From Geosiphon pyriformis uo1 (taxonomy: Eukaryota > Fungi > Glomeromycota): DNA of 64,000 nucleotides. A program made the translations under genes and the position numbers. How positions within the stretch are numbered: the first letter of the stretch is position 1; each line of letters begins with the position of its first letter. Location: assembly GCA_016748015.1 (NCBI GenBank), contig JAAOMT010000607.1:372001-436000 (forward strand), given 5' to 3'. The notes under the pieces are model-generated. The model did not search any database. It worked only from the letters and a program-made list of their open reading frames with translations, and had not been told where the DNA came from. Shown here one piece after another: positions 1 through 60,500 of this stretch.

Positions 1-1060
1 GTGAATTTATGAATCAAATATGTCCTAACTTACTTAATAGAGAGAAAAAAAGAGTTCTTGTAGTCTATAATAAATGTATTTTTTATTTAAATAATAACAA
101 ACATGGCATATAAACTGAACATAAAAATTTGCCACTAAAAAAAAAGGAAATAGAAAATTATTTATGGTCAGTAAATTTTTAACTAAAATTAATAGATGTT
201 TATATTTACAACAAAATGATATAGAAAACTATTCTAATATATTAGAAAAAGCATAATGTTATTTGCAATCTGGTATAAATCAAGATAGTTATTGGACAGC
301 AAACTATCTTCTTAAACAAATTAAATATAAAGCAATTTTAATTTTTAAGAAATTATATCCAGATTGTACAGTCATATTTGCTTTCAATAATAGCTTTAAT
401 TATACAGTATTTAGTAAAGATACTTTAATTACAAGCAGAATAAATTTAAGTCCAGGTAGAAGACAATCATTAATACAAAATATTTTTTTTGGATTAGATA
501 ATTAATTACAATTAATAATCTTTTTAGAAACATATTCAGATGAAAAACTTTGAGAATTGTCTAAAAAAATTAAACAAGTATTAATAGAACAAGAAAAATG
601 ACTATCAAAAAAATTAGTATTAGAATGCAAAAAATGCAAAAAAAAAATCAAAAATTTTCAAAAGTTTCTTATTATGCACATCAAGTAATATCTTTGGAAT
701 CTGATTTTTTTACTCAAAAAAATGCAATTACAGAATTAATCAAAAGTATAGAACATAAGTACATTTTTTTTCCAAAATTTCATTGTAAATTAAATTTTAT
801 TGAAAAATATTAAGGAGTTGCTAAAAGATATACACATAACAAATACAATTATTCATGAAAAGAATTACAAAAAACAGTATCTAAAAGTTTTAAATTAATA
901 TCTTTAATAACTATTAGACAATTTTCAAGAAAATATTGGTGTTATATAAATTTTTATAGAAAAAGTCTTAATGAAAAATTAGTAAAATATGCTATAAAAA
1001 AGTATTAATCTTATAAAAAAATTTCAGATAATATTCTTGAAAAATTAGACAAATTAAATA
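1..1060 (+). pseudogene. DDE transposase pseudogene, IS630/Tc1/mariner superfamily (C-terminal part)
   Basis: ORF fragments NQDSYWT...FAFNNSFNY (decayed FAFDNSSNH, second D) and HKYIFFPKFHCKLNFIEKY (P-x-x-x-x-E/D-L-N-x-I-E catalytic-E motif). Many stops. The long D-to-E spacing resembles fungal Sagan-like ITm elements (inference). Confidence 0.75.
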
Positions 1061-1330
1061 ATATTCAAACTTTGTAATACTGTATTTGGTTTTATATTAT
1101 ATAAAATTTAATAAAATTTTATTTTTTATTATAAATAATATATTAAAAACACATGTATATTGACCAATAAACTTTAATTATATAAATAAAAACACATAAA
1201 AATTATCATTTAAAATTTCGGACTGATTTATATTTTTGATGATTATAAATAGTTTGTATTATATTATTGATATTTTTTTAAAAAAAAAATTTTATAAAAT
1301 TTTATATTTAATTGTATTAATTATATATAA

Positions 1331-1430
1331 AAAAACTTGTTTTATTGGTTATAATCTGGATATATATGAACAGAACAAATGTGTTGTTATTTGTTTTGCT
1401 AATAAAGCTTTAAAAAAAACTATTATTAAC
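1331..1430 (+). mobile_element. About 100-bp internal fragment of LINE ORF1, present only in the left arm
   Basis: Translates as KTCFIGYNLDIYEQNKCVVICFANKA, similar to LINE1 ORF1 KTCFIGHNPGLYVHNRCAIICFKNKT. Absent at the matching right-arm position (~58370). Confidence 0.75.
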
Positions 1431-1813
1431 TATATTTTATATTAATTAAATTATTGATAATAATTTAATTACAAAAATGTTATATAAATTTTTTATATAT
1501 ATTTTATATTATAAAAGAAAATAATTTAATTTTAAAATTACAATTAAATAATTATTTTAATACCAAAATATTTGTTTTTATTTAATTAAAAGATAATTTA
1601 AAAATTTAAAATATATACAAAAATAAGTTATAAAAAAATTTTATTAAAAACAATAATCATATAATATATTTATTAAAAATTATTTTAAATAATTAAAAAT
1701 ATTAATTATATATTTTTTTTTATTAAGTTTAATGAGTATAATCTAATTATTACTTAATATTTTAGAACAAATTAAGTATTTTAAACCAAATGTAGTTTAT
1801 GTATTTTCTATAT

Positions 1814-2770
1814 TATTATTTGAAGAAAAAAAGCCTATTAAAAAAAGAAAGAAAAATATGACTTAAAGAAAAAATGTGACAAAATATGAAGGAACACAGA
1901 ATAATATACAATAACATTGGATAATACATTATAATATAGGATAATGTATTATAATGCAGGATAACATAGAATAATATATTATAATATAAGATAACATATT
2001 ATAATGCAGGATAACACAGAATAACATATAATAATGTCAGATAACATATTATAACATAAGATAATTAGTTATAACATAAAAAAACAAAATGATAGCTAGT
2101 AAGAACAAACAATCCAAAGCAATCCTGTAAAACTAGAGAATATGTATATATAATAGTAGCATTAAAAGCAAAAAAGACAGAATCACCAGACAAAAATTCA
2201 TTAGTTACTATTCCCTAATTAGAAACAATATCATTCCAAATATCAATAAATATACTTATTCAGCATCTCAAATTCAATTGCTTACTATCTACTCTAAATG
2301 TTGATAGTAATTAATACTTGATCATACTAGAACAATAGCTCTTGATCATGGCTATTAATAGGATATTAACTTGCAATTGCCTTGGCTTATTTTTTTATTT
2401 TTTTCTTTATCTTTTTTATTTTTTTTTTCTTTATTTTGTTGTGTTTACTAATTGATTAAGGATTAAGTGCTAAGTTATTGACATCAAAGATTGTCTGGTA
2501 AAAAACCTCTGTGAGTGGGTAAAATGTATAAGAATTATGGATTGCTTACTAGAAGATTGCCAGCCACCAAACTAAGAAAAAAATTGACAAAATTGCAATT
2601 CTGGGAAGCTATAGATAAAAATAACACAGGAATCTCTGTTCATTATACAAAAAACTCAATTAAAACCTTCAGAACATGAAAATCTTCAGATTACTATCAT
2701 CCTATATTAATTGAGCACCAAGTTATAAGTTTATTATTTGTTTCAAAATCCCAAATAATTACTTGTAATA
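1814..2770 (+). repeat. 5' LTR of element A
   Basis: Direct repeat of 11110-12067. TATA-like TGTATATATAA at ~2143, AATAAA at ~2245, ends TGTAATA. Confidence 0.93.
1901..2080 (+). promoter_or_regulatory. U3 array of 18 x 10-bp units (mostly ATAAYRYRNN), putative enhancer
   Basis: Perfect 10-bp register, e.g. ataatgcagg/ataacatatt/ataacacaga. Repeated at ~11198-11377. Confidence 0.7.
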
Positions 2771-2788
2771 TTTGGTGCTTTCTGTGAA
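2771..2788 (+). promoter_or_regulatory. Primer-binding site of element A
   Basis: TTTGGTGCTTTCTGTGA directly after the LTR. The family consensus TGGTGCTCCCTGTGAG would pair with a tRNA ending ...GGAGCACCA (Ile-UAU or elongator Met type; inference). Confidence 0.8.
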
Positions 2789-2833
2789 GTATAATTCTAC
2801 AAAGAACCAGTACCAATAAACAACCATCCAAAA

Positions 2834-5800
2834 GTAACAGAATTAGAAAGAATAGGGACAAACTATTTAGAATTTGCCAAATCCTTATTTTAACATTATT
2901 GTTAATATTTAAGATTAATCCACAATTACTTATCAGCAGAATCTGCCTTTAACTTTTACATTAACAAAAAAATCTCATATTTGCTAGGAGTACCAGTAGA
3001 AACAGACTTAACAAGAGGAAATTTTTACAATGAACTAATTCAAAACACCAGCCTATTAGCAAATCATAATTTTACAGCAATTCTTACTGAAATCAATAAA
3101 AAAATTGAACATTACACTTAACAAAAATATCTTATCACTTATACAACCAAAAATAAAAGAAAACTACAGATATTAGCAATAATACTTCAAAAAATACAAC
3201 CACCTACTTGAAAGAAAACAAGAGTTGAATCACCAACTCATCTATCATATTACTACATACCTAGAAGCATCATTAACATTTTATTAGCAGGCGCATTCAC
3301 ATCAAATGTAAAAACACCATTAGCATAGATACCATTTCAAAGTAAACAATCAAAAACTGACTTATTAAAAACCTATAGCAAATATTTTGAAAAATTTAAA
3401 TTGCAATCTCTGATGCCATCAAGATTTCAATCACTACTACCACCACCACCAGATTTCAAAATCACAAGCTCTTGGAAAGTAACAGAATCAGAAGAAAAGG
3501 AAGATGACAATCAAGAATTTAATTATCAAAACCCAATTGTAGAAAACCTGGAAGTTGAAACTCTGAATATTCAAATTCCAGAAAATCAGAACAATCCAAA
3601 TTCTGACATTATTAACCAGCAACATCTATCTTCAGTAATCATAACCAATTAGCCACCAATTAAACCAATTTAACAGTCACAAGTACCACCTCAACAACAA
3701 TTGTAACAACCACTTTAACAATCACCACAACAAATAGCATATGCATCAATTGCCAAGATTGAAAAATTTACTGGCAAAGAAGATAATACACAAGTATGGC
3801 TGAATAATATAAAAAAAGCCATTGCAGCCAACAGATAAAACAATACCAGAGTACTCCAAGCCATCCCATACTTTCTTTAGGATACTACTGACTTATAATA
3901 TCAAAGCTTGGCCAACAAACTTCAAGATTTCAACATGTTCAAAATTGAATTCTTGAGATATTTTAACAATAATAATAGTATTAATTGCTTGGCCAATATC
4001 TTTACTACCATTAAGCAAAGGGAAACTAAAACAGTCATTACTTATTTAGGACACTTCTACAGAAATTTATGCCAAATTTAAGCAATACAAACTGATTATT
4101 TCACCATATCACAAATCTTGAATCAATTTATTAGAGGTTTGTGCAATAGCATTCTTTAATGCATATGTCTATTACATTCAACAGATTTTCAAGTTGCAGT
4201 TACTTATGCCAGAGATTTGAAGCCACTGAATTAGAAGCCAACCACACCCAAGCTGTAAATTTAATAATAAATGGATTATCTAACATAGATTCCAAATTGA
4301 AACAATTCAGTGATTCGATTAATCAAAAAATTAAAAGGTACTTAGCTAACAACAATTAATCTATTTATCAATCTTTACAATATTGCAACAACTCAGGAAA
4401 CTCCAGTCAGCCTTAAAATCAAATGTGTCCACCATCATCAGTCAATTAATTATGACAACAAAAAACATGTGTTTGTTACAATTGTGGTAAATAAGGTTAT
4501 CTTAGAGCTAACTGCAGAGCATATTGCAATCAACTACAATCAGAGAGTTAATATTAAAACCCTGATCACAGATTTTAAACCCCGAACCACTACTCAAATC
4601 AAGATTACTATCAACCACATTACATTCAAGTAGCACAACAACCAATCTACCAAACTCCAATGTATTAAACTCCAACACCAGTTATCTACCAACCACAGCC
4701 ACAAGTGATATATCAACTCCAACAAATTTAAACTCTGCCACAAAATCCAACCCAGATGTTACCTAAAAACCAAAAACTGAGAATTGTTCAGCAAAACTGG
4801 AGATCAGTAATAATTGTTCATCAACTGACCCCCAGTTTATCTAACCACGCCTTAGGATTATGTCCCAGAAATTCAGGAAACAAGTACAACCAAAATCCAA
4901 GTTTTTTAAACTATCCAAGTCTTTTAGTTACTCCAGAAGATGTTTTAACCAACAATCTAAAAACCTTTCTGAAACAAACAATCAACAACAACATACCTCC
5001 AGCCACCATTACCAATGATAAATCATTAGCAACCATTTTTTTCTTCAAAATTAAGGGACCAACTGAAACTCCTTTTTTTAGTGAAACTGTCTTTGATATA
5101 AAACTCATCACTGCTATATACACTAATGCCAAGATTAATGGGCAGGCCATTAAGCTAATCTTAAATAGTGGTTCAGCAGACAGCATCATTATATAACAAC
5201 TCATGAACCAATTAGGTTACCAAGTTGATTGCACTGTTAATACTAGGATTAATATGGCAATGAAGCCACAAAAACTTCCATTAACAAGATTGATGACTTT
5301 CTCTTAGAAGTTAACAGTATTACTGTATCAATTAAAGTCCTAGTAATAGAAGCCACCCAATACCAAGCACTCATTGGTAATAACTGGTTGTTCAAAACCA
5401 ATACAATACTTGATTAGACTACACAGAAACTTTAATTCAGTCAGAATGGTCAATACACACGTGTACCAGCCACATGTGATTACTTCAAGACCACCAACAC
5501 ACAAGCACTACTTATCAAATTCAATGACAAAGAAAAAAAATCTACCTGAGAAGCCTACCAAGTTTTTTGGGCTGATACTAATCACAATAAATTACCATTG
5601 CTACTCTTCTGAAATGACAAAGAGAAAGAAAGAAAAGAAGATGTACTTGAAGAAGACACCACCAAAGAAGAAATCACTAGTGACTGAAAAAAAGAGTACT
5701 TACATAAACCAATAAAGGAGTCACTATATATACCACTCAAATACAAAGACTGCCAGAAAAAACTTTTTTTCATAGGAGCTTGGATTACACCTAATGAAAA

Positions 5801-8800
5801 CTACTGAACAAAAACTCACTATTACTGCAAGCCATGCCACAGAAAACACTACAGCTACCCAAAACAACAAGGAAAGTGGGATAATAAACTATGTTTTACT
5901 TATGGCAAACAATTACTCAATGAAAAAATGTGGAACAACATTTCTGGTTGAAGAGAAATATCCAACACTTTATGCCAGTACATGATTCTCATTAGTAACT
6001 AGATAAGTCATAAAACACCTATTACAGCTGCATAGCACCAAGCAATCTCTTACTTGAACAGTTACTTACATGACAAAGATAAAATCTGGCAAATGGCAAA
6101 CACCAAAGTTGAAAGCACTTTGTCCAATAAAATTTTAGAAATTAAAAACAACTCACTAAAGCCAGTGGAAACAGTTTTCATTCCAAATTCTGATGTTTTT
6201 CTCGACATTAAAACAGACCCAAAAAAATTTCATAAACACTATCAAAATCTAACACCTATAAGAACAGAGCAAGAACAACACTTGAAAGAAATAAACACCC
6301 AACTATGTAACCACTGTTTGATTCTATGTGATTTTCAATATTGTAATGAGTGTAACCTCATTTACAATCCACCATTATGCATGATCTACACAATCTTAGA
6401 AGAAGATAAACCAATTAGCAGCTGTATATTAGAATTGGAATCACAGTTCAATTTTAATTTAAACTCTGACAATGATAATGATAAAAACAACAGTCCCAGC
6501 TCTATTCAAAATGGCAATAATAATAATAATAATTCAAACTCCAATGCCAACTCCAAACAATATATCATGTTTTCTAATCTCTTCAAGGAGCAAGAACTCA
6601 AATAGTTCAGCAATAATGATGAAAGCATTATGCCAGAACATGCACATGATACAGATGTAGAGTTTAATCTGAGGTATCCCAGAAAAGAAGCCATAAAATT
6701 GGAACCACATTTGCACACATGTATTGATTTAAAAATAGCACTGGAAATCTTAGCAACTACAATAGTTCAGTTAGCATCTAGAAGTAGTTTGGCAAAAAAA
6801 AAAATTAATATAAGAGAAAAAATAATTAACACAGAATACATAAGAAATACCATTGCTATACTACAAAATGATTCAAAAAAGACCTATATTATAGAACCAA
6901 ACAAAAAGATAGCATAGGCAATATTCTTGCCTCTGGTTAAAATAACTCAGCTAGTGTTAATAGAAAACAAGAAAAAATTAGAAATAATAGCAAAAGGGAT
7001 AAATAGATTTGGATCCATGGAAAAAGTAGATATATCAGTTAATATGACAGAGGAAAAGATTGTTGACAAGGGAAAAATTATCTCTATTTGTCAACCAATC
7101 TCTATTCTATCATATGACCAGTACATAGTAGCTATAGAAAAGAAAGTAAAGGATTAGGCTCAAATATTTGAAGCAGAAATTATGATCTGTAAATCAAGAA
7201 AAATTAAACTTACTAATTTTTACATATCAGCTAAAAGCTTTAAAAATATCAAAATCCCAATATACAATACTACTGAAGATGTCATTAAAATCCTGGAAAG
7301 AACTATTATTAGATATTTGACTATTGAAGTTGAGGATCAACCACCAAACCACATTTTAAACTTTCCACAGCTGTGTAGTTATGTAGATATTATATCACAA
7401 ACTATTTACAGACAAAACAAATATTATCTACTCTAACCAAAACAATTGAAAAAGATAAACTTGGAAAATCTAGACTCACTTCAATATATGCAGATCAAGA
7501 TGTTACTTAACAACTTTAATAACATTTTTGCCAGTCAAAATGAATTTGGCTATACTAATATCATCCAGCATTAGATCAAGACTGGTAATATAATGCCAAT
7601 AAAACAATGAGCATACAGAGTACCACTAGCCAGCCATAAAATCATCCAGCAGAAAATCAATTGGATGCTAGACAATGGGTTAATTCAATCATCCATGAGT
7701 TCATGATTATTACCAGTGATACTAGTCCATAAAAAAAATGGGAAAATCTGCTTTTGTGTGGATTATAGAAAACTCAACAGAGTTATTTGTGAAGACAATT
7801 ATCTGATTTCATGTATCCAAAAATTATTTGATGCTTTTGGTGGAAAAAAATAGTTTTCAACATTGGATTTAAATAGTGGTTACTGACAAATAGCCATAAA
7901 TTCAGCCAACAAAGAAAAAATCACATTTATAACAAAGAGAAATTTTAAATTTGAAGTAATACCATTTGGCTTAATAAACACTTCAGCCACATTCCAATGG
8001 CTAATGGAAATTGTTTACATTAGACTACTATGGAAATCAGTAGTTGTGTACTTAGATAATACCAACATGTTTTCTAAGACATTTAATGATCATTTACATT
8101 ATCTCTAACAAGTGTTTGAAAGATTGAGAAGAGTCAGACTAAAGTTAAATGCCAACAAGTGCTTCTTTGACAAAACAGAATTAAAATTTTTGGGACATAT
8201 TGTAAGTAAAAATGACATCAAAATGGATCCAGACAAGATTGAGATAGTTAAAAACTTTCTAGTACCAACCAATTTAACCAAACTATAAATATTCTTGGGA
8301 TTTGCTGGATACTATCACCACTTTATTAAAGACTTTTCTAAATTGGCTTAACTATTACACCAGCTTTAAGCAAAGAACACCAAATATAAATAAATGAAAA
8401 ACCAGCAAGAAGCTTTTGACATATTAAGAAGAAAGCTTATTTAAGCTTCAATACTGATTTATCCAGATTACAGCAAGCCATTTATCATCACCACCAATGC
8501 ATTAGATCAAGCATTAGAAGCAGTATTATCACAGAGAGGACCAGATAGAAGAGAATATCCAGTAGTATATGTTAGCCAAAGTTTGAGTCCAGCAGAAAAA
8601 AACTATAAAACATTAGCATTAGAACACTTAGCTATTTATTAAACAGTTATAAAATGGAAGAAATACTTAAGCCAAAAATTTGACATATATACTGATCACA
8701 AAGAATTGACATTAATCCAGAAACAAGAATTTGGAGATAATCACTATGTCAGATGTAAAATAGAACTATCACTATTTAAATATACAGTACATTATAAAAA

Positions 8801-10245
8801 AAGAAAAGACAATAGAAATGCTGATGGCTTGTTGCAAATAAGACAAATCTGAACATTTCAAAAAAAAAAACAACAAAAGATGAACACACAAAAATACCAA
8901 TAACTCCAAAATTATATAAATACTAAACAGTTCAAGGAGAAATTATCTCAAAAAAAACAAAACACCATAAAACAACAATCAAAATATTTTATCATCTATT
9001 GCAATCTACTTTATCAAAAGAACCAAAAAAATTTTGAACAACCAACTAGAGTAATCACAAAAGCAGAGAAGGAAACAATACAATTCAACATGTACTCAAA
9101 TCCAACAGTAGGACATTGCCATAAAAAAACAACCATAAAAAAAACCAGAAATAGATATTATTAGACATCCATGTATTCAGACATTATCCAATACATTCAA
9201 AATTGTGATGCTTGTTAGAAAAAAAAAAACAAGACTCAACGAGCCATTAAGACCAATCAAAATAGGACAACTATTTGATTATATTGGAATTGACTTAGTC
9301 AGACCATTAACAATAACTAGCAGAGGGAACAGATATATTACAGTAGTCATAAATTATCTCACTAAATGGCCAGAAGCAAAAGTGATTCAAAGAGCAAATG
9401 CAGAATCTGTTGCCAAATTTGTCTATCAAGATCTGATTTGTCAACATAGATGTCCAAAAGAATTATTATCTGATCAAAAAACTCACTTTGTAAATAAAAC
9501 ATTAACAGAACTAAGTTAAAGATTCGGAATAAAAAGACTATTATCATCACCATATCATTCACAAACCAATGGATTAGTTAAAAGATTTAATAAAATATTG
9601 TGCAAAGTAATAGCCAAGATCAGCCAAAAAAACCAGGATAAATAAGATTTATTCATACCATCAGTATTATTTGCTTATCAGACAATAAAGCAAGATACTA
9701 TATAAGCAACATCATTTGAATTAGTATACAGTAGAACAGCAACATTACCAGTTGAGATAGAGATTAATACATATCCAATAGAACCAATAACAAAAGACAA
9801 TTTCCAAGAAAAATTGCTGAAAAAAACATATGACTTAATGGAAATGCTAGAAAACAAATGATGAAAAACAGCTGATAACATCCAAAAGTCACAAAAAAAA
9901 CAAAAAAAAAGACACAATAACCAACTACCAGATAAACCAGTTGAATTCAAAATTGGAGACAAAATACTATTACATTATACCAAAGTGGAAAAACAGTAAA
10001 ATAGAAAGTTTGGCCCAAAATAGAATAGACTATTTCACATACACAAAATTTTGGAAAATGGATCTTACAAGTTATGATTAGAAAACAGAATTCTGAAAAA
10101 AACAGCACATAGAAATCATTTAAAAATTTATTAAACAACACAAAAATTGACATTATTGGTACCATAACTAAGAGCACAAATTCCATTAATCAGACTAAAA
10201 AATATACCACGAGATATGAAACCAATTATAATCATCAAAACATAA
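2834..10245 (+). pseudogene. gag-pol of element A (Gag, zinc knuckle, protease, Cys-rich domain, dUTPase, RT, RNase H, integrase)
   Basis: Decayed CCHC knuckle CYNCGK at ~4474, LILNSGS (decayed DSG) at ~5155, dUTPase at 6630-7025, RT YLDN (decayed YLDD) at ~8049, integrase GIDLV...TKWPEA at 9286-9378. Many nonsense mutations. Confidence 0.92.
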
Positions 10246-10254
10246 CTATAACAC

Positions 10255-11094
10255 ATGCCAAAATTTAGATATTACATATATATAAGCCTTAAGACCACAA
10301 AAAAGGAAATGATAGAAATTTCAAACATAGATCTTTTAGACAAAATTTTAAAATTATCTAAACAATTATTTAATAAAATTCAAAAATCTACATCTCAAAT
10401 AGAGATTATAATCAATAAAAAAAAGATAAGATATAGAGATAAGGAGAAAAAGAGATAAGCAAAAGTTCAACTAAAACTAACTATTCCTATCTTTACACTC
10501 TGCCCAAGAAAAAAATTTTACAAAAAAGAATTAAATATATTTCTTAGACAGAACATGAAGAAAAAGAAGGGGAGAAAGAAAAAGAAGTAAAAAAATTGGA
10601 TAAAAAACAAAAACAATTATATACAACATAATTGGCTTTCAAGCTAGAAAAAATTAAAGAATCTTTAACTTATAGAACCAAACTTCCTAAAACAGGGAAG
10701 TGGACACCAAACAATGTCCAAGAGTAGAAAAAAACTCTCTTCAACATATTGGTTTTACAAAATTAGGGAACAACTAGACTTAAAAAACCCATATAGAGAC
10801 TACAACCAGAAAACTTTTAACAAAGAAGCAATACAACAAGTAGAAAAATTTATAGGAAGAAGCAACCAGACACTATACTACAAAGCAACATGTCGATTAT
10901 ACATCACTTTTTAATATTGTTCAAACATACTATTGAATGAATCTTTAAAAAAGATAACAGTTAACAACATAAGATAAATGACTAATCAACAGTTTGAAAA
11001 TTTACAAAAAGCCATAGTCAACATAACCATTAAATATTACATGAATAAAGTTCTATTAACAGATATAACTGATTTTGCAGAAGCTCAATATTAA
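10255..11094 (+). pseudogene. Extra 3' ORF (ORF3) of element A, unknown function
   Basis: ATG 10 nt after the pol stop. Fragments 10255-10458 and 10714-10914 are homologous to B ORF3; ends DFAEAQY-stop at the PPT. Confidence 0.7.
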
Positions 11095-11109
11095 AAAAAA
11101 AGATGATAA

Positions 11110-18198: not shown

Positions 18199-18248
18199 CT
18201 TGCTATATCTAATCTGTTTCCTGTTTCTTTTTTAATGGACTTTTCTAG

Positions 18249-38486: not shown

Positions 38487-38510
38487 TCCATTAAAAGAAT
38501 ATATAAAGAC

Positions 38511-39169: not shown

Positions 39170-39183
39170 AAAGGAGGAAATAA

Positions 39184-46939: not shown

Positions 46940-47141
46940 AACTTAATAAAAAAAATATATAATTAATATTTTTAATTATTTAAAATAATTTTTAATAAAT
47001 ATATTATATGATTATTGTTTTTAATAAAATTTTTTTATAATTTATTTTTGTATATATTTTAAATTTTTAAATTATCTTTTAATTAAATAAAAACAAATAT
47101 TTTGGTATTAAAATAATTATTTAATTGTAATTTTAAAATTA

Positions 47142-50100: not shown

Positions 50101-53100
50101 GGTTTTTTACCAATTTCATGCTGAAGAAGGCTGTCTCTAACAAACAGTTCTCATATTTGGTGTCAGTGGTTTTTCACTTTATTGTTGCATACAGGACTCA
50201 GTTCAGTTTTGTTTCTATTAATGTGTGTGAAGTGGAACACTATGATTCGCAAGGACTTAAAATCCAAATCTGGCTTGCCACACGACTTTCCTAATAATGC
50301 TATTCACCATCTTTCTCTGTATGGTTTGAAGTCTTTTAAACAGGTTCAGGCTGAAGACAAGTCAGTTTCTATTATTAGTTTCATCAATTTTGTTGGTATC
50401 TTGGGCTGTTTGTTTGCACATAAATCACATGACTTGCAGGTTCTCAGCTGGCACTCTCGCCACTCCCTACTGTTTCCTTTCCATATTAATATCAATTCTT
50501 CAAATAATTTTTTGGCTGGCATTGTTCAGATTTTTTTGGGATGTGATCTTTCTCTGGGTGGTCTTGTGACCAATGCTTTTTATTTTCCAAATGAAATTCT
50601 TATGTCTATTGTTCTTGGTGAGCCCACCTTTTATAGATGTGTCTCTTCACTTTGATGTTATGGAATTGCCTTTGTTAAGCAGCTTCACAATCGTGCTGGT
50701 TCTATTTTCGAATAGAAGACTTTCAAGTAGTGGAAGAGATTGGATCCTCAGGGCCCAGTTCTTTATTGGTTTGATGTTTTTGTTTGCTTTCTGAGTGATT
50801 CTGGGCCATTTTTTGTCTGTGATCTTCTGTTGCCAAAAGTTGGTTTGTTTAACATTCTTAAGTCTCATGAGTTTGAAATTGTGCATAGTCGTCTATTGGA
50901 GGTTGACTCCAGTCATCTTTTTTTGTTTATAGATGGGTTTCTGAGTGGGCTGGGTACTCTTAGTATGAAAGCTGGTGCTGCTGTTTTTTTTAAGAACATT
51001 GATTTGGGTTTGGGTGTGGAGGTATTTGGGTTGGTTTTTTCTACTATGGCGAAGTTATAGGCTATTGCTCTGGCTTTCAAGTGTGTTGTTTTTTCTCATT
51101 CGGTCGACTTGTTTTCGGACAGCCAGGCTGCTTTAGATGCGTGCAAGTCAGAATTTATATTGACTCATCCAGATTTTAGGAATCAGTGTTGAATTGAGCA
51201 TTGCCATATTGCTGATGTTATTTAACACAAAAATTTAGATGTTAATTAGATTAAAGTTAAAAATCACTCTGGTGTCTTGGGCAATGAGCATGCTGACACT
51301 CTTACTAGTGCTGCTGCAGTCTCTAGTATGCATCTTTCTCACATAATTAATGATGTTACAGATGACTATTTCTGGTGTTGGATTAAGTAACAAACCTGTA
51401 ACTTGGTGCTCAAATCTAGTTGCAGTTGATAGTAATCTGAAGGTTTGTGTCTGAAGGATTTGTATCCAAAGAGTTTGGTTGAGTTCTTTGTATAATGAAC
51501 AGAGATTCAATAGTAATAGTTTTATCCATAGCTTCCTGAAACTGCAGTTTTGTCAATTTCTTTCTCAGCTTGATGGCTGGTATTTTTCTTGGTAAGCTAT
51601 CCTTAATCAAGTGTTTTACCCTTATTTCTGGATCTTTTACCAGTCATGTTTATCTTGACGTCAGTATCCTGTGCATTAATCCTTAATAGAGTTAGTAAAC
51701 AACAATAAAATCAAAGCAAGAAATAAAAAAAATAAGCCAAGGCAATTTGCAAATTAGTTTTCCATCAATAGCCGTGATTAAGAGCTATTGTTTCAGTGTG
51801 ATTAAGTATCAATTACTATCAACATGAAGTGTTGATAGTAACAGCAGGTTTGAGATAACAAACAGTTATTTATTTGTGGTTTTGGAAAGTTGTCTAGATG
51901 AAATCTAAACTAAGAGGTCTATCTTTTTAGCTTCTAATCCTACTGCTATATATACATAATTGAGATTCCTCAATTCCTCAATTCTTTACAACAAGAATTC
52001 TGGGATTCCTGGAATCCTGCAATTCCTTTGAGAGGAATCCTGGAATTCTGGAATCCTGCAATTTCTTGTGAGAATTCTGTAATTTCTGGAATCCTGCAAT
52101 TCCTAAGAAGAATCCTGAAATTCCACATTTTACTACGTCTACTTCTGATTGGTTAATAACTATGCTAATATATATTCCTTATATTTCTATGAGTAACATT
52201 ATTCCCTTCTTTTAATATTGAGCTTTGTCGAAATCTAACTCTGTTAATTCTTCTTTTTGAAGTATTTCCTGAATTTCATTTTCAAGAATTACTTGTGTTA
52301 TTTGAGTCTGTAATTCTTCAAATTGAGTGTTGGTAATCTTTCCTGGATATATCAGATCAAATTCTGCATCAGTATTATGCGCACATTCTGGCATGATACT
52401 TTTATCATTATCACTGAACCATTTCAGTTCTTGCTTCTTGGTGAGGTCAAGAAGTACAATATATTGTTTGTAGTTTGAATCAAAGTTTGAATCTGAGTTG
52501 GAATTATTGTCATTGTTATAGCCATTTTAAATAGAGCTAAAACTGTTATTTTTGTTGTTGTCGTTGTCAGAGTTTGAATCAGGATTGGAACTTGATTCCA
52601 ATTCTAATGTGCAGCTGTTTATTGGTTCTTCTTCTTCAGGGATTGTGTAGATCATATATGGTAGTAGATTGTAGATGAGATCACAATTATCACAGAATTG
52701 GAAGTCACATGAAATCAAACAGTAGTCACATAATTGGGTGTTGATTTCTTCCAAGCATTGCTCTTGCTCTTCTCTCATGGGTGCTAGATTCTGATAGTGT
52801 TCATAGAATTTTTCTGGGCTGTTTTCTAAGTCAATAAAGGCATCCAGGTTAAGAACCAAAACAATGTCTGTTGGTTCTGGAGGGTTATTTTTGATTTCCA
52901 GAATTTCACTGGGCAAAGTGCCTTCTACTTTGGCATTGGCCATTCGCTAGATCTCGTCCTTGGTGTGTAGATAGCTGTCTAGGTGGGATATAGCTCGATG
53001 CCATGCTGCTGTGATGGGCGTACCACGACTCACCCAGTCACTGATAAGGATCGTGTATTGGCATGAAGTGTCACACATTCCTCCTCAACCAAGAATATTG

Positions 53101-56100
53101 TTCCACATTCCTTCATTGAGTAATTGTTCACTGCAAACAAGACATGGTTCATTGTCCCACTTGTCTTGTTTTTTTGGGTAGTCATATTGTTCTCTATGAC
53201 AGGACTTGCAATAGTAATGAGTTCACGTCTAGTAGTCTTCATCTGGCTCTACTCAAGCTCCTATTGAAGACAGTTTTTTCTTACAGTCCTTGCATTTGAG
53301 AGGTATATATAGCGGTTCTTTTATTGGTTCACGTGAATATTTCTTTTCCCAGCCACTAGTTATTTCTTCTGTAGTGGTGGTTTCTTTAGATATGTTTTCT
53401 TCATTTTCTTTCCCTTTTTCCTTGTTCTTTTCTTCCCAATCTAGAATTGGTGGTATTTTACTTTGGTTGTTGTTGGTCCAAGTGTTGATGATGGCTTCCC
53501 AGGTAGGTTCTTCTCTTTGTTTCTTCTTTCCGTTGTTGTTGTTGTTCCAGGCAAGTATTGGTGGCAGTTCGTTGTAATCGACATCAGCTCACAAGACTTG
53601 GTATGCTTCCCAGGTGGGTTTTGCTTTTTCTTTCTTGAATTCGATAAGTGGTATTAATGGTGTAGTGATGGGCTTGAAGTGGCCACATGTGGCTAGTACC
53701 CGTGTGTGTTGACCGTTCTGGCTAAGCTGGAGCTCTTGAGTGTTCCAATCTAGTGTCATATTGGTTTTGGACAGCCAGTCATTCCCAATGAGTGCTTGGT
53801 ATTGAGTGGCTTCCATAACGAGTACTTTGATTGGTACTATGATGCCATTGACTTCTATGAGGAAATCATCAATCTCTCCAATAGGTGTTTTGGTCGCTCC
53901 ATCAGCTGTAATAATCCTGGTGCTGGCAGTGTAATCAACTTGGCAACCTAATTGATCCATGAGTTGTTTTGTGATGATGCTGCCAGTTAATCCACTATCT
54001 AGAATCAGTTTAATAGAGTGATCATCAACTTTTGCATCAGTATACATCATGGTGATGGATTTCTTTTCGAGTGCTGCTCCACTGAACAAAGGTGAATTGA
54101 TGGTTTTTTCCAATTCGAAAAGAAAAATGGCTGCGAGAGATTTGTTTTTGGCGACCATTGCTGGTGGAATATTGTTGGGGAGTGTTGTTTGGAGTTGGTT
54201 GGATTCCAAGTTGTTGGTGGTGGTGTCTTCTGGGGTAACCAGGAGACTTAAATAGTTCTGGGAATTCAGGTTTTGGGTGGAACTGGTACCCAGATTTCAC
54301 TGTTGAGAGCCTAATGGTTGGTGAGAGGAGCTGGGAATTGGTTGATAAACAACCATTGCTGATCTCCAATTTTGAGTGATTCTAGGTCTTGGGTTTCCTG
54401 ATGTCATTTGAGTGGAGTTTTGGAGTGGTGTTTAAATTGGTTGTTGGGGCTGATAAATTATTTGGGACTACAGCTGATAAATTACTGGTGGCTGTGGTTG
54501 ATAAATTGAAGATTGATATACTTGTAGTTGATAGATTGGTTGCTGCATCATTGGCAGGTAAGTGGTTTGATATTGGTCTTGATTTGGGTAGTGATTCTGA
54601 GTCTGAAATCTGTGATCGGGATTTCAATATTGATTTTCCAATCATGAATTGTTGCTATAAAATTGACAGTCGGCTCTAATGTGATTTTGTTTATCATAGT
54701 TGTGGCAAACATGCATTTCTGGCTGCCATAACTGATTGGGTAACAATGATGACAATGATGTTAATGGACATGGCTGATTTTGGAAACAATTTGTGTTTCC
54801 TAAATTATTGCATCGTTGTGATAGTTAATAGATTGCTCAATTGTCAGCTAAGTATCCCTCTAATTTCTGATTGATTGTATTACTGAATTGTTTTAGTTTG
54901 GAATCCAAATCAGATGATCTGTTCATCACTAAATTTACAGCTTGGGTGTAGTTGGCTTCTAGCTTGGCTGCTTCAAAATCTCTAGCATGGGTAATGGCAG
55001 TTGGGAGGTTAACTGGATGCATTGAACATATTCGCTAAAGAATGCTACTGCACAATACTCTGATGAACTGGTTCAAGATCTGTGGTGCTGTAAAGTAATC
55101 AGCTTGGATTACCTGAATTTGGCGCAGATTTCTATGGAAGTGTCCCAAGTAAGTGGTGACTGCTTCTGTGTTCCCTTGTTTGATGGTGGTGAATGTGTTG
55201 GTCAAGCAATTAATACTATTGTTATTACTAAAGTATCTCAAAAATTCTGTTTTGAACTCATTGAAAATTTGTGATTTGGCAGCTAGGCTCTGATACCATG
55301 AGTCGGCAGTATCTTTGAGAAAATAGGGGATCACTTGAAGAGCTCTACTGTCATTCCATCTGTTGGCCACTATGGCTTTTTCAATGTTGTTAAGCCATAT
55401 TTGGGCGTCATCTTCTTTGCCGGTAAAATTGTCAAGTTTTGCAATTGGTGCGTAGGCCATTGGATCTAAGTTGGGTTGTTGGAGTGATAGTTGAAGTGAC
55501 AATTGTATGGGTTTGGCTATTGGATTAATTGGTGGTTAATCGATGATGATTATTGAAGGTAAGTTTTGTTGATTTATTAAATTGGGATTTTAATTATCCT
55601 GAGTTGGCAGTGTTTGAATATTTGGAGTTTTGATTTCCAGATTTTCTGGATTTAGATTTTGCTGGGTTTGAAGATTTGGGGTTTCAAATTCCAGGTTTTC
55701 AGTGATCAGATTTTGGTAAGTGAATTCTTGATCTTCAGCTTCTTTTTCTTCCTCTTCTTCTGATTCCGTTACTTCCCACAAATCAGAAATTCCGAAATCT
55801 GGGGGAGGCAGTGGCGATTGGAGTCCTGATGACATTGATGATCACAAGTTAAATCCTTCAAAATATGTGCCATATGGTCCTAATAACTCTGCTTTTCTTT
55901 GTTTACTTTGGAATGGGAATCGTCCAAATGCTGATGTTGTGTTTGATGTGACCATGCCAATAGATGTAATATTAATGGTGCTTCTGGGTGTATAGTAATA
56001 TGATAGATTAGTTGGGGACTCAACTTTTGTTTTCTTCTAAGTAGGTGGTTGTTTTTTTTTGGGTGTTACTGCTAGTGTTTGTAGTTTTCCTTTGTCTTTG

Positions 56101-58278
56101 TTTGTGTAAGTAATGGGGTATTTTTGCTATGTGTGGTGTTCAATTTCTTTGTTGATTTCCATGATGATGGAGGCGAAATTATGATTTGTTGACAGGTTGG
56201 TATTTTGAATTAATTTACTGTAAAAAACTTTTCTTGCCGATTCAATATTTACTGGTGTTCTTAACAGATAGGCAATTTTTTTGTTGACATAGAAATTGAA
56301 AGCTGATTTTACTAATATGTGGTTGTGATTTAATCCCAAATGTTGACAGTAGTGTTGAAATAAGGATTTTGCAAATCCTAGATGGTTTGCTTCTATGTTT
56401 TCTGATTTTGCCACTTTTAGATTTGTGTTAGTGCTGGTTCTCTGTAGGATTATATCTCACAGGGAGCACCAAATGTTACAGGTGACTATTTCTGGTGTTG
56501 GATTAAGTAACAAATCTGTAATTTGGTGCTCAAATCTAGTTGCAGTTGATAGTGATCTGAAGGTTTGTGTCTGAAGGGTTTGTATTTAAAGGGTTTGGTT
56601 GAGTTCTTTGTATAATAGACAGAGATTCAATGGTAATAGTTTTATTCATAGCTTTCTGAAACTGCAGTTTTGTCAATTCCTTTCTCAGCTTAATAGCTGG
56701 TATTTCTCCTGGTAAGCTATCTTCAATCAAGTGTTTTGCTCTTATTTCTGGGTCTTTTACCAGTCATGTTTATCTTGATGTCAGTACTCCATGCATTAAT
56801 CCTCAATAGAGTTAGTAAACAACAATAAAATCAAAACAAGAAATAAAAAAAATAAAGAAAATAAAGAAAGAAAAGAAATAAGCTAAGGTAATTTGCAAGT
56901 TAGTTTTTCGTCAATAGCCATTATCAAGAGCTATTGTTCCAGTATGGTTAAGTATTAATTACTATCAACATGAAGTGTTGATAGTGGCAGCAGATTTGAG
57001 ATAACAAACAGTTATTTATTTGTGGTTTTTGGAAAGTTGTTTAGATAAAATCTAAACTGAGAGGTCTGTCTTTTTAGCTTCTAATCCTATTGCTATATAT
57101 ACATAATTGAGATTCCTCAATTCCTCAATTTTTCACAACAAGAATCCTGCAATTTCTTGTGAGAATCTTGTAATTCTTAGAATCCTGCAATTCCTAAAAA
57201 GAATCCTGAAATTCTACATTTTACTATGTCTACTTCTGATTGGTTAATAACTATGTTAATATATATTTCCTATATTTCTATAAGTAACAATAAACATTTT
57301 CTCAGGACCAGTAGTACTGCAGTGTCCAGTAATTTTAGGCATTTTGTGCATGGTGTTTTCCAATCTGTTCACTGTGCATGCTGAGAAGTTGGTTCTGGTT
57401 TCTGGGTCTTGGTGGATAGTCTGTGTGCTGATGTTGATTGGTCTAAATCTTCTTTGGTGTGGCATCCAGACTTTCATTTGGCTGCTGGTTTCACTAGTGC
57501 TCAGACTGCTGGCTTTTGGACATATTTTATAAAGGCTTTGCATTATCGTCTTCCAGTTGCTGTGTGTAAGTGTCTTTATAATAGGAGTTACCCCAGTGTG
57601 GTTTGTCTGTTTTGTGGCGATGTTGAGATTTCAGACCATGTGTTTTCTTGCCCATTTGATGCTGCTGACTGTGCTTGATTGGTGGAAGTACCTACATCTG
57701 CTTGGGAGACACACTTGGGTTTATTTCACTCTTCTTCATATGTTTTGTAGTTGCTTTCTACTTGCATATCAAATGTTAGTGTTGGTACAGCTCTGTGTAA
57801 GAGCTTTGTTTTCAGGGAGTGGTATCATAAATATGTTGCTGTTTTTAAAGACTCCAAGATGGTGGCTCAGAATATTATAGCCTTTGTGCATGAGTTTTGT
57901 CTTGTATTTTATGATGATATTTGGCTGGTGCATGCTAAGCACTAGGCTGTTATGGAGAAAAGTGGCATAATCTTACATAATGGCTCTGTTCCTACTTTTA
58001 TCTCTGGTTTTTTTTTAGTGCTTTCAGCTGGTATGGTTAGATTGTTAGGTATTGCAAATGCATTTGGTGTCAGTTTTGGGTTTCATAAATCTTGTTTATT
58101 TTTTTCAGGTTTAGGTGACATGGTTTCAGTACACATAAGTGCCTAGTGTTGTCTTGACTAGCTTGAGTAACTGGTTACATATAGAGAATATATGATTCAC
58201 ACCTAGTTTAAATCACTTGTATAATGTATTGTACTAGGCAGTATTTAAACTTCATTCATTAATATAATAAAAAAAAAA
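47142..58278 (+). mobile_element. LINE3: 5'-truncated LINE (end of ORF1 47198-47523; ORF2 47520-58146), interrupted by Gypsy C
   Basis: Poly(A) tail at ~58269-58278, TSD about AAAATTA (47135-47141 / 58279-58285), RT AFVDD at ~49821. ORF2 resumes at 57294. Confidence 0.9.
51354..57289 (-). mobile_element. Ty3/Gypsy element C, internally deleted (no RT/RH/IN), nested in LINE3
   Basis: LTRs 56474-57289 (5') and 51354-52198 (3'), TSD ATGA(51350-51353)/ATAA(57290-57293), PBS 56473-56457, PPT 52199-52213. Gag, protease and Cys-rich fragments are present; the dUTPase start is fused to the ORF3 tail at ~52340. Confidence 0.94.
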
Positions 58279-58639
58279 AAAATTAAACTATTTTCTTATA
58301 TAATATAAAATATATATATTAAAATAATAAAAAATATATGTAATATTTTTGTAATTAATATAAAATATAAATTTTTTACATATAATTAACACAATTAAAT
58401 ATAAAATTTTATAAATTTTTTTTTTTAAAAAAATATTAATAATATAATACAAACTATTTATAATCATTAAAAATATAGATCAGTTCAAAATTTTAAATGA
58501 TTTTTATATGTTTTTATTTATATAATTAAATTTTATTGGTTAATATACATGTGTTTTTAATATATTATTTATAATAAAAAATAAAATTTTATATAATATA
58601 AAACCAAATACAGTATTACAAAATTTAAATATTATTTAA

Positions 58640-60500
58640 TTTATCTAATTTTTTAAAAATATTATTTGGAATTTTTTTATGAGATTTATACTTTTTTATA
58701 ACATATTCTACTAATTTTTTACTAAGACTTTTCTATAAAGATTTATATAATACTAATATTTTCTTGAAAATTGTTTAATAGTTATTAAAAATATTGATTC
58801 AAAACTTTTAGGCACTGTTTTTTGTAATTTTTTCCATAAATAATTGTATTTGTTATGTGTATATCTTTTAGCAGCTCTCCAATATCTTTTAATAAAATTT
58901 AATTTACAATGAAATTTTGGAAAAAAAATGTATTTATGTCTCATACTTTTGATTAATTCTTTAATTGCATTTTTTTGAGTAAAAAAATCAGATTTCAAAG
59001 ATATTACTTGACATGCATAATAAAAAACTCTTGAAAAATCTTTGATTTTTTTTGCATTTTTGGTATTCTAATACTAATTTTTTTGATAGCCATTTTCTTT
59101 GTTCTATTAATACTTGTTTAATTTTTTTAGGCAATTTTCAAAGTTTTTTATCTAAATATGTTTCTAGAAAGATTATTAATTGTAATTAATTATCTAATCC
59201 AAAAAAAGTATCTTGCATTAATAATTGCTTTCCATTTAGACTTAAATTCATTCTGCTTGCAATTAAAACATCTTTACTAAATACTGCATAATTAAAACTA
59301 TTATTGAAAGCAAATATGACTGTACAATTTGGATATAATTTTTTAAAAATTGTAATTGTTTTATATTTAATTTGTTTAAGAAAATAGTCTGCTGTTTAAT
59401 AACTATCTTAATTTATACTAGATTACAAATAGCATTATGTCTTTTCTAGTATATTAGAATAGTTTTCTATATCATTTTGTTGTAAATATAAACATCTATT
59501 AATTTTAGTTAGAAATTCACTGACCATGATTAATCTTTTATTTTTTTTTTTAGTGGCAAATTTTTATATTTAGCCTATATGCTATATTTGTTATTATTTA
59601 AATAAAAAATACATTTATTATGGATTACAAGAACTCTTTTTTTCTCTCTATTAAGTAAATTAGAACATATTTAATTCATAAATTCACTTTTATACTTTGA
59701 CATATACTTTTTATGATTATATATTTTATCTAAAAATTCTTTTCAAGATTACAAGATGTCATTTCTTTTATGTCTATTATAATATAAGTCTTAATAATAT
59801 TGTTGGAATAAATAATCAAGAATTTTAAGTCATTTTACTGCAGTCATAAGACTAATAGTTTTTTCTTTCATTATTCTAATATTAGAAAACAATTTATGCT
59901 TAATGAATTTTTTAAATATGACTGAAATGACATTGAAGTTTTGGTTTTTAATCCAAATATGACATCTTTCTACAATGTTTTTATTATCAATTATTGTAAT
60001 TGTTTTTTGGTGTTTTCTATGTTTTAATGTTAAAAACTTATCATTAAGCAACCAATACTTTACAAAATATTAAATTCTTCATGTTTTCTATACATTATCA
60101 TCAATAAAAATCTTTTGGGCAATTTTCAAACTGGCATTAATTTTTTCATGCATTATTATTATTTAACAAGATAAAATATTCAAAAATAACTCTTTTTTGA
60201 TTATATTCAAAAACAGTTAATTAAGCATGTTGTTTTTTTAAATGTTCTTTTAACTTTTGTCCTTTTTTTATTTGACTAATATATAAATCAACCTCACTTT
60301 TTGAATTGCTTGAAGATTCATTAAATTTAAATCATTGTAAATCTGTAGTTTGAGTATTACTAATATTAAAGAAAGTAGTAATTTTTTTAGTTTTGACTGC
60401 TGCTTTAATGAATAAACTATTTGGTCTATATTTATTATAATAAGTTGACTTTAGTATTTTTTTTGTCATATAAAAGCCTCACTTTTTTTTTAGATGATTG
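58640..60500 (-). pseudogene. IS630/Tc1/mariner-type transposase pseudogene (right-arm copy, including the N-terminal part)
   Basis: HKYIFFPKFHCKLNFIKRYWRAAKRY (58753-58998), the mirror of 1-1060, plus upstream fragment 59830-60051. The upstream limit is approximate and TIRs were not identified. Confidence 0.72.

Follow-up and report, generated by a model that had tools for sequence, protein, structure and literature searches.

A probable fold-back inverted duplication around a nuclease-fold-family gene in Geosiphon pyriformis, with C-to-T decay of its transposon-derived parts

The window analysed here, 64,000 nucleotides of a Geosiphon pyriformis uo1 contig (JAAOMT010000607.1, positions 372,001 to 436,000), lies in a transposon-rich part of the genome and holds the inner part of a large palindrome. 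As assembled in a gapped short-read scaffold, this palindrome is probably a real head-to-head inverted duplication that arose by fold-back or template-switch repair, later received insertions of transposable elements (TEs) and underwent C-to-T decay in its TE-derived parts alone; we give this combined reading a probability of roughly 0.6. Since the duplication, a C-to-T process acting on both strands has altered about one-third of all C/G sites in those TE-derived parts, in the left arm and the right alike, whereas the unique gene unit that was duplicated with them (about 2.3 kb, counting introns and flank) has been spared and shows low divergence in which transitions (ts) are about as frequent as transversions (tv).

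In self-BLAST, the window read from 17282 leftwards to -2067 (negative positions precede its first letter) is the reverse complement of 18663 to 61759, and the two are collinear once the TE insertions found in one arm only are removed. An asymmetric spacer of 1380 bp (17283 to 18662) separates the arms. Without insertions the left arm measures 8.7 kb and the right arm 8.2 kb; correcting for the gaps brings both to about 8.9 kb. The giant palindrome proposed in the first-pass annotation, with arms of at least 7 kb and a spacer of about 1.4 kb, is thereby borne out; the limits given for it there (1 to 59687) are not, as the feature runs past both ends, and most of its arm sequence consists of old copies of dispersed TE families. 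Beyond -2067 the arms continue outwards for at least 19 kb more, the left one to at least -21416, and the outer breakpoint of the duplication was not found either as far as that position or, on the right, as far as position 174174 of a second scaffold, C536.

From the outside inwards, self-BLAST gave the following inverted pairs: -2067..1334 with 61759..58372 (90.4%), 1527-1732 with 47141-46937 (98.5%), 12070-12197 with 40109-39982 (93%), 12192-14897 with 29940-27252 (92.5%; 164 ts, 13 tv), 14897-15138 with 20315-20075 (94.6%), 15421-15957 with 20075-19550 (97.2% with gaps, 99.2% without) and the core pair 16898-17282 with 19047-18663, identical at 383 of 385 positions. The core's two mismatches are found 3 and 5 bases in from the breakpoint, leaving about 380 bp identical, introns included, much as the 379 bp reported earlier. 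The parts of the structure are listed below, with the strand where one applies and with ts/CG standing for transitions per C/G site.

1 to 1334, onward to -2067: left arm outer piece, an old member of an AT-rich, dispersed repeat family of about 4.3 kb (dozens of copies at 85-88%; extends about 940 bp past -2067); ts/CG 0.23-0.48; pairs with 58372-61759.
1335 to 1432: about 100 bp extra, left arm only (junction and alignment reading).
1433 to 1809: left inter-TE stretch, matching three right-arm pieces (58371-58280, 47141-46937 and 40195-40110), collinear at 89% in a reconstructed alignment.
1810 to 12067, + strand: LTR retrotransposon L-b, left arm only, with LTRs 1810-2768 and 11106-12067 that are 86.5% identical (122 ts, 7 tv); the right arm is an uninterrupted site.
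12070 to 15138: left TE-derived part, hypermutated, a dispersed repeat relic with an AT-rich tail (more than 40 family copies at 71-79%; ts/CG 0.18-0.38; CpG o/e 0.00); pairs with 40109-39988, 29940-27252 and 20315-20075.
15139 to 15420: small repeat insertion L-a, 282 bp, left arm only; the right arm is continuous at 20075; copies also at C536:155544-155689 and 171277-171423.
15421 to 15957: left unique 3′ flank of the gene, not hypermutated (ts/CG 0.02-0.08); 4 mismatches and one 11-bp indel against 20075-19550; no genome copy beyond the partner arm, except that the innermost 122 bp (15836-15957) recur on C536.
15958 to 16000: left gap, written as 43 N, really about 227 bp; the left copy's last exon falls inside it.
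16001 to 17282, - strand: left gene copy L of the putative PD-(D/E)XK-fold family, mid exon 3 to exon 8, 5′-truncated at 17282 (tblastn of family member P0001); 97% identical to C536:116377-117678.
17283 to 18218, + strand: 56-bp minisatellite, the larger part of the spacer, in a single orientation throughout (TRF periods 43, 56, 99 and 155).
18219 to 18662, + strand: 5′ region of the right copy, the unique part of the spacer, comprising ATG 18276, exons 1 and 2 and the initial half of exon 3 (from alignment with the copy on C536).
18663 to 19047, + strand: assembled portion of right gene copy R that L also has, from the latter half of exon 3 to where exon 5 starts (partner 17282-16898).
19048 to 19549: right gap, written as 502 N, really about 1145 bp (ruler C536:116761-117905).
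19550 to 20315: right unique 3′ flank, leading into the first stretch of TE-derived DNA; partners 15957-15421 and 15138-14897.
20316 to 27251, + strand: LINE-like element R-a, right arm only, with Pfam RVT_1 and RNase_H (reverse transcriptase, RNase H) in the ORF 24336-26465; the left arm is continuous at 14897.
27252 to 29940: right TE-derived part; pairs with 14897-12192 at 92.5%.
29941 to 39987, + strand: LTR retrotransposon R-b with dUTPase and protease, right arm only (junctions, LTR pair, Pfam dUTPase), with TG..CA ends and an (A)CCAG target duplication.
39988 to 40195: right arm piece; pairs with 12191-12070 (93%) and 1809-1733.
40196 to 46936, - strand: LINE-like element R-c of the R-a family, inverted relative to R-a, right arm only (junctions); 22374-27196 matches 44999-40202 at 69%.
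46937 to 47141: right arm piece; pairs with 1732-1527 at 98.5%.
47142 to 58279, + strand: LINE-like element R-d of the R-a family, right arm only (direct matches to R-a; RVT_1 at 49470-50291; junctions), holding a nested LTR element with LTRs 51353-52201 and 56473-57292.
58280 to 61759: right arm outer piece; pairs with 1526..-2067.
61760 to 62719, + strand: Gypsy-type 5′ LTR that cuts the right arm; its 3′ junction (150558-150799) and the rest of the arm (150800-174174) are on C536.

Chance pairs of TE copies were ruled out as the source of the arms. The arms are 90-99% identical to each other as against 71-88% to other family members, their collinearity runs through the flanks between the TEs, and junction reading shows reciprocal empty sites, either arm being uninterrupted where the other carries an insertion. 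The inner arms occur just twice in the genome and the gene copies just three times. The duplicated segment already held old TE relics before it was copied, and several retroelements landed afterwards in either arm, some with target duplications; LTR pairs confined to one arm have a similar transversion age (0.25-0.9%).

The centre offers a view of how the duplication could have arisen. A right copy with its 5′ exons faces a left copy from which exons 1 and 2 and half of exon 3 are missing and whose truncated end is fused to the 56-bp minisatellite; fold-back or template-switch repair would be expected to leave such an arrangement. The event would have begun with a break at the edge of the minisatellite just upstream of the gene, and repair by either route would have yielded a head-to-head inverted segmental duplication. 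The broken end, we infer, would have primed 1.38 kb away, at 18663 within exon 3, and from there synthesis would have run outwards again along the chromosome. The copy on the intact side would keep its own satellite and 5′ exons, the mirror copy would start in mid exon 3 and abut the satellite at 17282/17283, and 1380 bp of asymmetric spacer would come to lie between them. The satellite is present at just three places in the genome, and at the other two gene copies it lies upstream of the gene in the expected orientation; within the spacer, blocks 17277-17594 and 17901-18218 are 97% identical. The junction of the inverted, truncated exon 3 with the satellite is internal to one contig (16001-17594), and shows 0-2 bp of microhomology and no shared k-mer able to cause a graph chimera.

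The left and right assembly gaps can be sized against the C536 paralogue, which has no gaps. Both sides of the left gap align collinearly with it (16001 corresponds to C536:117678 and 15957 to 117906), and the gap itself equals C536:117679-117905, with the last exon at C536:117733-117900. The flanks of the right gap correspond to C536:116760 and 117906, so that the gap should hold the rest of the right copy, the partner of 16001-16897. A third gap of 20 N (17595-17614) lies inside the satellite and joins two contigs that end in it; neither gene copy in the window is fully assembled. Three N gaps at the centre, a core (16001-16897) assembled only once and the 20-N satellite join are observations that weigh against the fold-back account.

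They would also be expected if the palindrome were a scaffolding artefact, in which two arms that are copies of a large dispersed segmental duplication were joined head to head via a collapsed, identical gene repeat and a satellite and no chromosomal palindrome existed. We regard this as unlikely. The gaps (15958-16000, 17595-17614 and 19048-19549) and the singly assembled core, the three contig ends that stop in the same satellite (17594, 17615 and C536:3), the fact that C536 carries a third gene copy besides the distal right arm, and an assembly that appears to be Illumina short-read (PMC9453076) all speak in its favour. However, contig 16001-17594 by itself links the inverted truncated gene to gene-proximal satellite in head-to-head orientation, and that satellite block is 97% identical to the block upstream of the right copy and only 86% to that of C536. 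Moreover, a two-locus solution requires a fourth gene copy and a third inner arm, and neither was found in the genome.

Scaffold C536 begins with the same satellite and carries the third, complete gene copy, in the same orientation and without arms. Its satellite (C536:1-1012) and contig 17615-19047 are 92.5% alike, a value that is no evidence on overlap either way. C536 is not a haplotig of the window, since it matches just 2.4 kb around the gene plus the distal arm, and the middle arm pieces are absent from it. The distal arm on C536 is collinear with about -2059..-21416 at 86-91%, and no distal right arm was found within +114 kb of the window's own scaffold. Both ends of the Gypsy insertion have a CCAA target duplication in common (CCAA then TGTTAC in the window, GTAACA then CCAA on C536), which ties 61759/61760 of the window to C536:150799/150800; the left arm provides the uninterrupted site. 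The insertion marks the point at which the distal right arm moves to C536, and flags a probable rearrangement or mis-join in the assembly between scaffolds C667 and C536. Other scaffold joins are conceivable, as C536 has the distal arm, the third gene copy and a satellite start.

The inverted duplication acquires its main interest from the way in which its arms have diverged. They are truly different sequences with near-pure transition divergence, so the earlier view that the outer arms are not an assembly echo stands. Transitions amount to 2% of C/G sites in the unique 2.3-kb core versus 32% in the TE-derived arm parts (left-right contrast, Fisher p=1.5e-21). The excess consists almost purely of transitions (275 ts to 17 tv, and 164 to 13), the ts/tv ratio being 12-16 in TE parts versus about 1 in the gene; the C/T class is similar to the A/G class, and both arms are equally affected. 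Arm identity, followed against distance from the centre as the first-pass annotation had proposed, shows a step and not a gradient: ts/CG is 0.18-0.48 in the adjacent TE DNA and 0.00-0.08 in the duplicated gene unit, and the change, under 300 bp wide, falls at 15138/15421 on the boundary between multi-copy and unique DNA. Identity appears to rise toward the centre because the TE parts have decayed and the unique unit has been spared.

The same contrast is found against the unlinked copy on C536, where the left copy differs by transitions at 10/376 C/G sites in the gene versus 277/770 in the flank (p=4e-43) while transversions are equal (0.70% versus 0.67%). CpG o/e is 1.17 in the core versus 0-0.27 in the TE parts, and decay proceeds in DNA whose CpG is already exhausted. 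Sequence context matters on the 5′ side (48% of TpC sites changed versus 23% of ApC sites), and there is no preference for CpA (33% of sites changed) over CpT (34%) or CpC (35%). The gene unit has been spared although it is duplicated, and we therefore infer that the process is aimed at transposon or heterochromatic DNA and not at duplication as such.

Two explanations of the near-identical core had been offered before. Protection from deamination fits the data, in that the excess outside is made of transitions, ends at the TE/unique boundary and recurs in the comparison with C536. Homogenisation by arm-to-arm conversion may have contributed, but is not needed, given transversions that are not significantly lower in the core and the contrast with C536. 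In its full form, it would make the palindrome old and real, its inner 2.3 kb kept identical by conversion and the step the end of a conversion tract, which we consider rather improbable. Left-right transversions in the core (0.22%) are nominally below those of the outer arms (0.54%) and of the left-C536 comparison (0.70%), yet neither difference is significant (p=0.31 and 0.14), the core value resting on 2 events in 911 bp. The right copy differs from C536 at many sites as far as 18645 and at hardly any from 18663 on, the very point at which the left copy starts, a pattern that would fit homogenisation of the part common to all three copies. On the other hand, the excess outside the core is one of transitions only and its step sits on the TE/unique boundary; the unlinked C536 copy has the same gene-versus-flank contrast at equal transversion age; and the core has kept its CpG, which conversion between two decayed copies could not have restored, while the arms have lost theirs. 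The small transversion count leaves room for a core that may be younger or converted.

A large mobile element with long terminal inverted repeats and its own nuclease, also suggested by the first-pass annotation from inward-pointing transposase copies at the outer ends, is hardly credible: a nuclease-fold gene does sit at the centre and oppositely oriented retroelement copies do lie further out (2284-5576 versus 56985-53583, 69%), but those copies are unrelated one-arm insertions at non-homologous arm positions, the arms are mosaics of unrelated older TE relics and unique DNA that on the left extend at least 19 kb past the window and on the right pass to another scaffold, no arms flank the gene copy on C536, and the unit as a whole occurs once in the genome and has neither termini nor a target duplication.

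Inverted duplications with a spacer, made by fold-back (hairpin-primed) or template-switch (MMBIR/FoSTeS) repair, are known from yeast, human genomic disorders and tumours. The present palindrome resembles them in its mirrored arms, in a short, asymmetric spacer that is the original stretch from break to priming site, in having little or no microhomology at the inner junction and in a break beside a tandem repeat; it differs in that no second junction was found on the outer side, the age of the arms has allowed several retroelement insertions to accumulate in them and the linkage is that of a gapped scaffold. Break repair is known to give such duplications, so the palindrome is in itself nothing unusual. 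The palindromes of primate sex chromosomes, which are maintained by conversion and have genes near their centre, likewise combine large inverted repeats and a short spacer with near-identical, gene-bearing inner arms. Here, however, high identity is confined to non-TE DNA, one of the gene copies is truncated and transversions give no significant sign of homogenisation.

The value of the palindrome is that of a natural experiment. Both arms are of the same age and in the same location, so that the contrast between decayed TEs and an untouched gene is a direct measure of what the C-to-T process targets. Classical RIP in Neurospora and other Pezizomycotina targets any duplication above about 0.4-1 kb, genes included, prefers CpA, and depends on cytosine methyltransferases of the RID/Dim-2 type and on a sexual cycle. 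The decay described here shares with RIP the near-pure C-to-T and G-to-A change on both strands of repeats, the equal damage to both copies and the AT-rich relics. It differs in preferring a 5′ T, in lacking a CpA preference and in sparing a duplicated, unique 2.3-kb gene unit of 98-100% identity. One published study reports that it detected no RIP signatures in Gigaspora margarita, a relative of this glomeromycete, or in Mucoromycotina (PMC8647823). The target choice seen here argues against a duplication-triggered mechanism of the RIP type in this lineage. It is possible, at somewhat less than even odds, that this glomeromycete has a cytosine-deaminating genome defence that is guided by TE identity or chromatin state, ignores a 2.3-kb duplication of 98-100% identity and is mechanistically distinct from RIP.

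The description of the centre as a nuclease-fold gene pair holds in part: the two genes belong to a family with a predicted restriction-endonuclease-like fold, but the left one is truncated and the pair is not intact. Natural homologues served as proxies in the fold test, P0001 at full length and P0008 at domain length, and the window exons were searched singly. The P0008 model has a predicted restriction-endonuclease-like alpha/beta core (mean pLDDT 91.3), and its structure matches were led by DrdV (Z 10.7 over 140 residues, 3.0 A), BpuSI (Z 10.3) and HsdR (8.2), followed by many chains of the same fold. The 513-residue model was poor and its N-terminal helices dominated the structure search; Foldseek returned nothing significant for either model (for P0008, a weak match at E 0.059). 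By sequence, Pfam gave no match for any exon or for ten full-length members save one sub-threshold Endonuclease_1, and a PDB search with a 76-sequence profile gave none. The likeness to the N-terminal nuclease domains of DrdV and BpuSI lies in the predicted fold and in conserved acidic and lysine residues: D97, E111, K123, E127 and D138 (P0008 numbering) are conserved at 90% or more, on or near the central strands. The family differs from these enzymes in having no Pfam or PDB match at the sequence level and in that the canonical (D/E)xK spacing is not evident. Among the sequences searched, it is restricted to Glomeromycotina, and the models lend fold-level support to a large, unannotated, Glomeromycotina-specific family of putative nuclease-like proteins. 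At four short loci (about 3 kb each) from a DNA search with the core gene, there was no local inverted duplication around the match. The window exon retains GRRGDLI and EYGCCEAGK, and an open frame from a satellite-borne ATG at 17345 continues in frame into exon 3 of the left copy.

Comparison of the window and its surroundings with themselves bore out the collinear, reverse-complemented halves described in the first-pass annotation, and the sequence points to a real inverted duplication of the fold-back type that is larger than first reported, with its arms putatively linked across N gaps at the centre. The assembly searched comprises 128.3 Mb in 792 scaffolds (the window is G000:C667:372001-436000); the published Geosiphon pyriformis assembly comprises 129 Mb in 795 scaffolds with 29% GC and 64% repeats, from Illumina reads (PMC9453076, Table 1). 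The window itself is very AT-rich (12-40% GC) and consists of nested retroelements with reverse transcriptase, RNase H, dUTPase and protease domains.

Mirrored pieces of the left arm (descending coordinates) and right arm, from the centre outwards; negative values lie upstream of the window
17282-16898 with 18663-19047, innermost pair
15957-15421 with 19550-20075, second pair
15138-14897 with 20075-20315, third pair
14897-12192 with 27252-29940, fourth pair
12191-12070 with 39988-40109, fifth pair
1809-1433 with 40110-40195, 46937-47141 and 58280-58371, sixth pair
1334 to -2067 with 58372-61759, outermost pair

The count of six transposon insertions proved correct, and at their junctions the opposite arm provides the empty site in every case. 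The flanks of the left-arm insertion 1810-12067 adjoin in the right arm, those of the right-arm insertions 40196-46936 and 47142-58279 (the latter with a nested LTR element inside) adjoin in the left arm, and the right-arm insertion 29941-39987 is bounded by TG..CA and flanked by an (A)CCAG target duplication. Stripped of their insertions, the arms come to 8.7 kb (left) and 8.2 kb (right), a correction for gaps bringing each to about 8.9 kb; about 100 bases at 1335-1432 are present in the left arm alone. Three insertions (20316-27251, 40196-46936 and 47142-58279) belong to one LINE-like family with copies about 70% alike, all within about 3 kb of original right-arm sequence and none in the left arm. 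A small repeat of about 150-280 bp, possibly a miniature element, occupies 15139-15420 in the left arm only and has copies at C536:155544-155689 and 171277-171423 (84-86%) on another scaffold.

The arms are composite. The outer piece belongs to a dispersed AT-rich family (dozens of members, 85-88% identity) that itself runs about 940 bp past the end of the mirror match, and the stretch from 12192 to about 15077 to a different one, of which there are over 40 members at 71-79%. The only other genomic copy of 15421-15957 is the partner arm, except for its innermost 122 bp, which also lie beside the gene copy on C536; the gene unit occurs in three places only. Because the mirrored pieces are much nearer to each other than to any other family member and share their flanks, the transposon relics are older than a single duplication.

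The arms continue past both ends of the annotated stretch (1-59687) and have no end inside the window. A Gypsy-type 5' LTR starts at 61760 directly after CCAA. A same-family LTR on C536 stops at 150799, and beyond it come CCAA and the window sequence from -2068 onwards, in reverse complement. The left arm is uninterrupted at this point, and the two LTRs mark the opposite ends of a single insertion. On C536 no more than 242 bp remain of the 3' LTR, with other elements before it. C536:150800-174174 is collinear with -2059 to -21416 at 86-91%, so that the left arm reaches at least 38.7 kb, transposons included, and the distal right arm is carried by a different scaffold; differences over the first 3.6 kb are mostly transitions (277, with 24 transversions). 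Another copy (81%) of the Gypsy element, C536:174181-176992, starts exactly where this collinearity is last seen, and the duplication may continue beyond it.

The proposal of a self-inverted mobile unit carrying a nuclease is not supported, as there are no termini, no target duplication and no second copy of the unit; the 'inward-pointing' outer transposase copies are retroelements that each inserted into one arm, at positions that do not correspond between the arms. A scaffolding artefact is unlikely but deserves more weight. In its favour, no partner for the outer left arm turned up within +114 kb on C667, the distal right arm being on C536. That scaffold also bears the third gene copy, which has the same orientation and lies 32.5 kb upstream, and it starts with the same satellite as the centre, beside the upstream region of that gene in inverted form. 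The cause is either a wrong join between scaffolds or a rearrangement that cut the arm within the Gypsy element. The inverted repeat at the start of C536 (791-1383, followed by a 790-N gap) matches the upstream flank and satellite at C536:115255-115846 at 92%, 114 kb away. A 94-codon open frame without a Pfam match (C536:114877-115613; locus L002:438-719) lies just upstream of that satellite.

The central junction lies inside one contig (16001-17594). In the right gene copy the start codon lies at 18276 and exons 1, 2 and 3 come after it; upstream of this copy a 56-bp minisatellite (17283-18218) keeps a single orientation across its whole length; the left copy (minus strand) starts mid exon 3 at 17282, against the far end of the same satellite. 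At 17282/17283 the sequences have no common word long enough to yield a chimera in the assembly graph; their microhomology amounts to just 0-2 bases in a loosely similar stretch. Repair of a break at 17283 could have primed at 18663 of the same molecule and proceeded by outward copying, leaving 17283-18662 as the loop; a one-way satellite with a left copy truncated against its far end is the product expected from such a repair. The minisatellite has three genomic sites (17283-18218, C536:115614-115941 and C536:3-1012), directly upstream of a gene copy at two, while the third runs off the start of C536. At 17196-17345 (minus strand) an ATG in the reverse-complemented satellite is in phase with truncated exon 3, and the left copy could encode a chimeric protein.

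With the gap-free paralogue C536:115614-118022 as a ruler, both window copies are incompletely assembled. The left gap (15958-16000), whose flanks are collinear with the ruler, lacks 227 bp rather than 43 and hides the last exon; the right gap should span about 1145 bp and hold the partner of 16001-16897 and the remainder of the right copy. A 20-N gap sits within the satellite. The core is present essentially once in the assembly.

The gene has short introns, and its relatives come from Glomeromycotina only (Gigaspora, Dentiscutata, Funneliformis, Rhizophagus and Ambispora). The spliced model was searched one exon at a time, and fold work used natural relatives. No exon or full-length relative matched Pfam, and a 76-sequence profile found nothing among PDB sequences. 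The model of a full 513-residue relative was poor; that of a 281-residue member corresponding to exons 5-8 was confident (mean pLDDT 91.3). Among its top structural hits are nuclease domains with the restriction-endonuclease fold, from DrdV (Z 10.7; 140 residues, 3.0 Å), BpuSI (Z 10.3) and HsdR (Z 8.2), together with two mitoribosomal-protein chains (7a5f_s3, Z 10.5; 3j7y_5, Z 9.8); BbvCI, EcoRI, NgoMIV, NucC, Hjc and others rank lower, and Foldseek agrees weakly. Together with conserved D, E and K residues on or beside the central strands, kept in the window exon, these neighbours support the predicted nuclease fold at fold level, on a homologue.

The identical inner core of about 379 bp was confirmed (about 380 bp, introns included); the 385-bp core has two mismatches, 3 and 5 bases from the junction. 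Arm-to-arm differences elsewhere are dominated by transitions (275 against 17 transversions in the outer piece; 164 against 13 in 12192-14897). Instead of a gradient of identity with distance from the centre, there is a step in one mutation class at the unique/multi-copy boundary: 15421-17282 has 0.00-0.08 transitions per C/G site, against 0.18-0.48 at all points outside 15138. Pooled, the core has 4/173 and the transposon-derived parts 455/1419 (p=1.5e-21), with transversions at 0.22% and 0.54% (p=0.31). The contrast recurs when the left copy is compared with the unlinked C536 copy: 10/376 in the gene and 277/770 in the distal flank (p=4e-43), with transversions at 0.70% and 0.67%. For CpG, the observed/expected ratio stands at 1.17 in the gene core and at 0.00-0.27 in the transposon parts. 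The step in transitions only, the transversions that do not differ significantly and the intact core CpG argue that a C-to-T process has struck transposon-derived DNA and spared duplicated unique DNA since the duplication, in support of the suggestion that the core is protected from deamination.

Changes are equal in both arms and on both strands, TpC sites changing at about double the rate of ApC or GpC sites, with no CpA preference; the LTR pairs of the one-arm insertions, at similar transversion ages, follow this pattern too. Arm-to-arm conversion is not required, although it may have contributed: the core offers two transversions for the comparison, and differences between the right and C536 copies stop just before 18663, where the left copy starts. 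That the core is near-identical probably comes from which DNA a transposon-directed C-to-T process targets and not from how far the core lies from the centre; for that process the locus adds a same-age, internal control.

Between the right copy (18276-18662) and C536:115990-116376, the three 5' exon stretches have about 22 differences in about 245 bp, at synonymous and non-synonymous sites, along with an in-frame indel of 9 bp within a Ser/Asp-rich repeat; the two intervening introns differ at 2 positions over about 143 bp. This excess in exons over introns could stem from patchy conversion or from diversification of the N-terminus.
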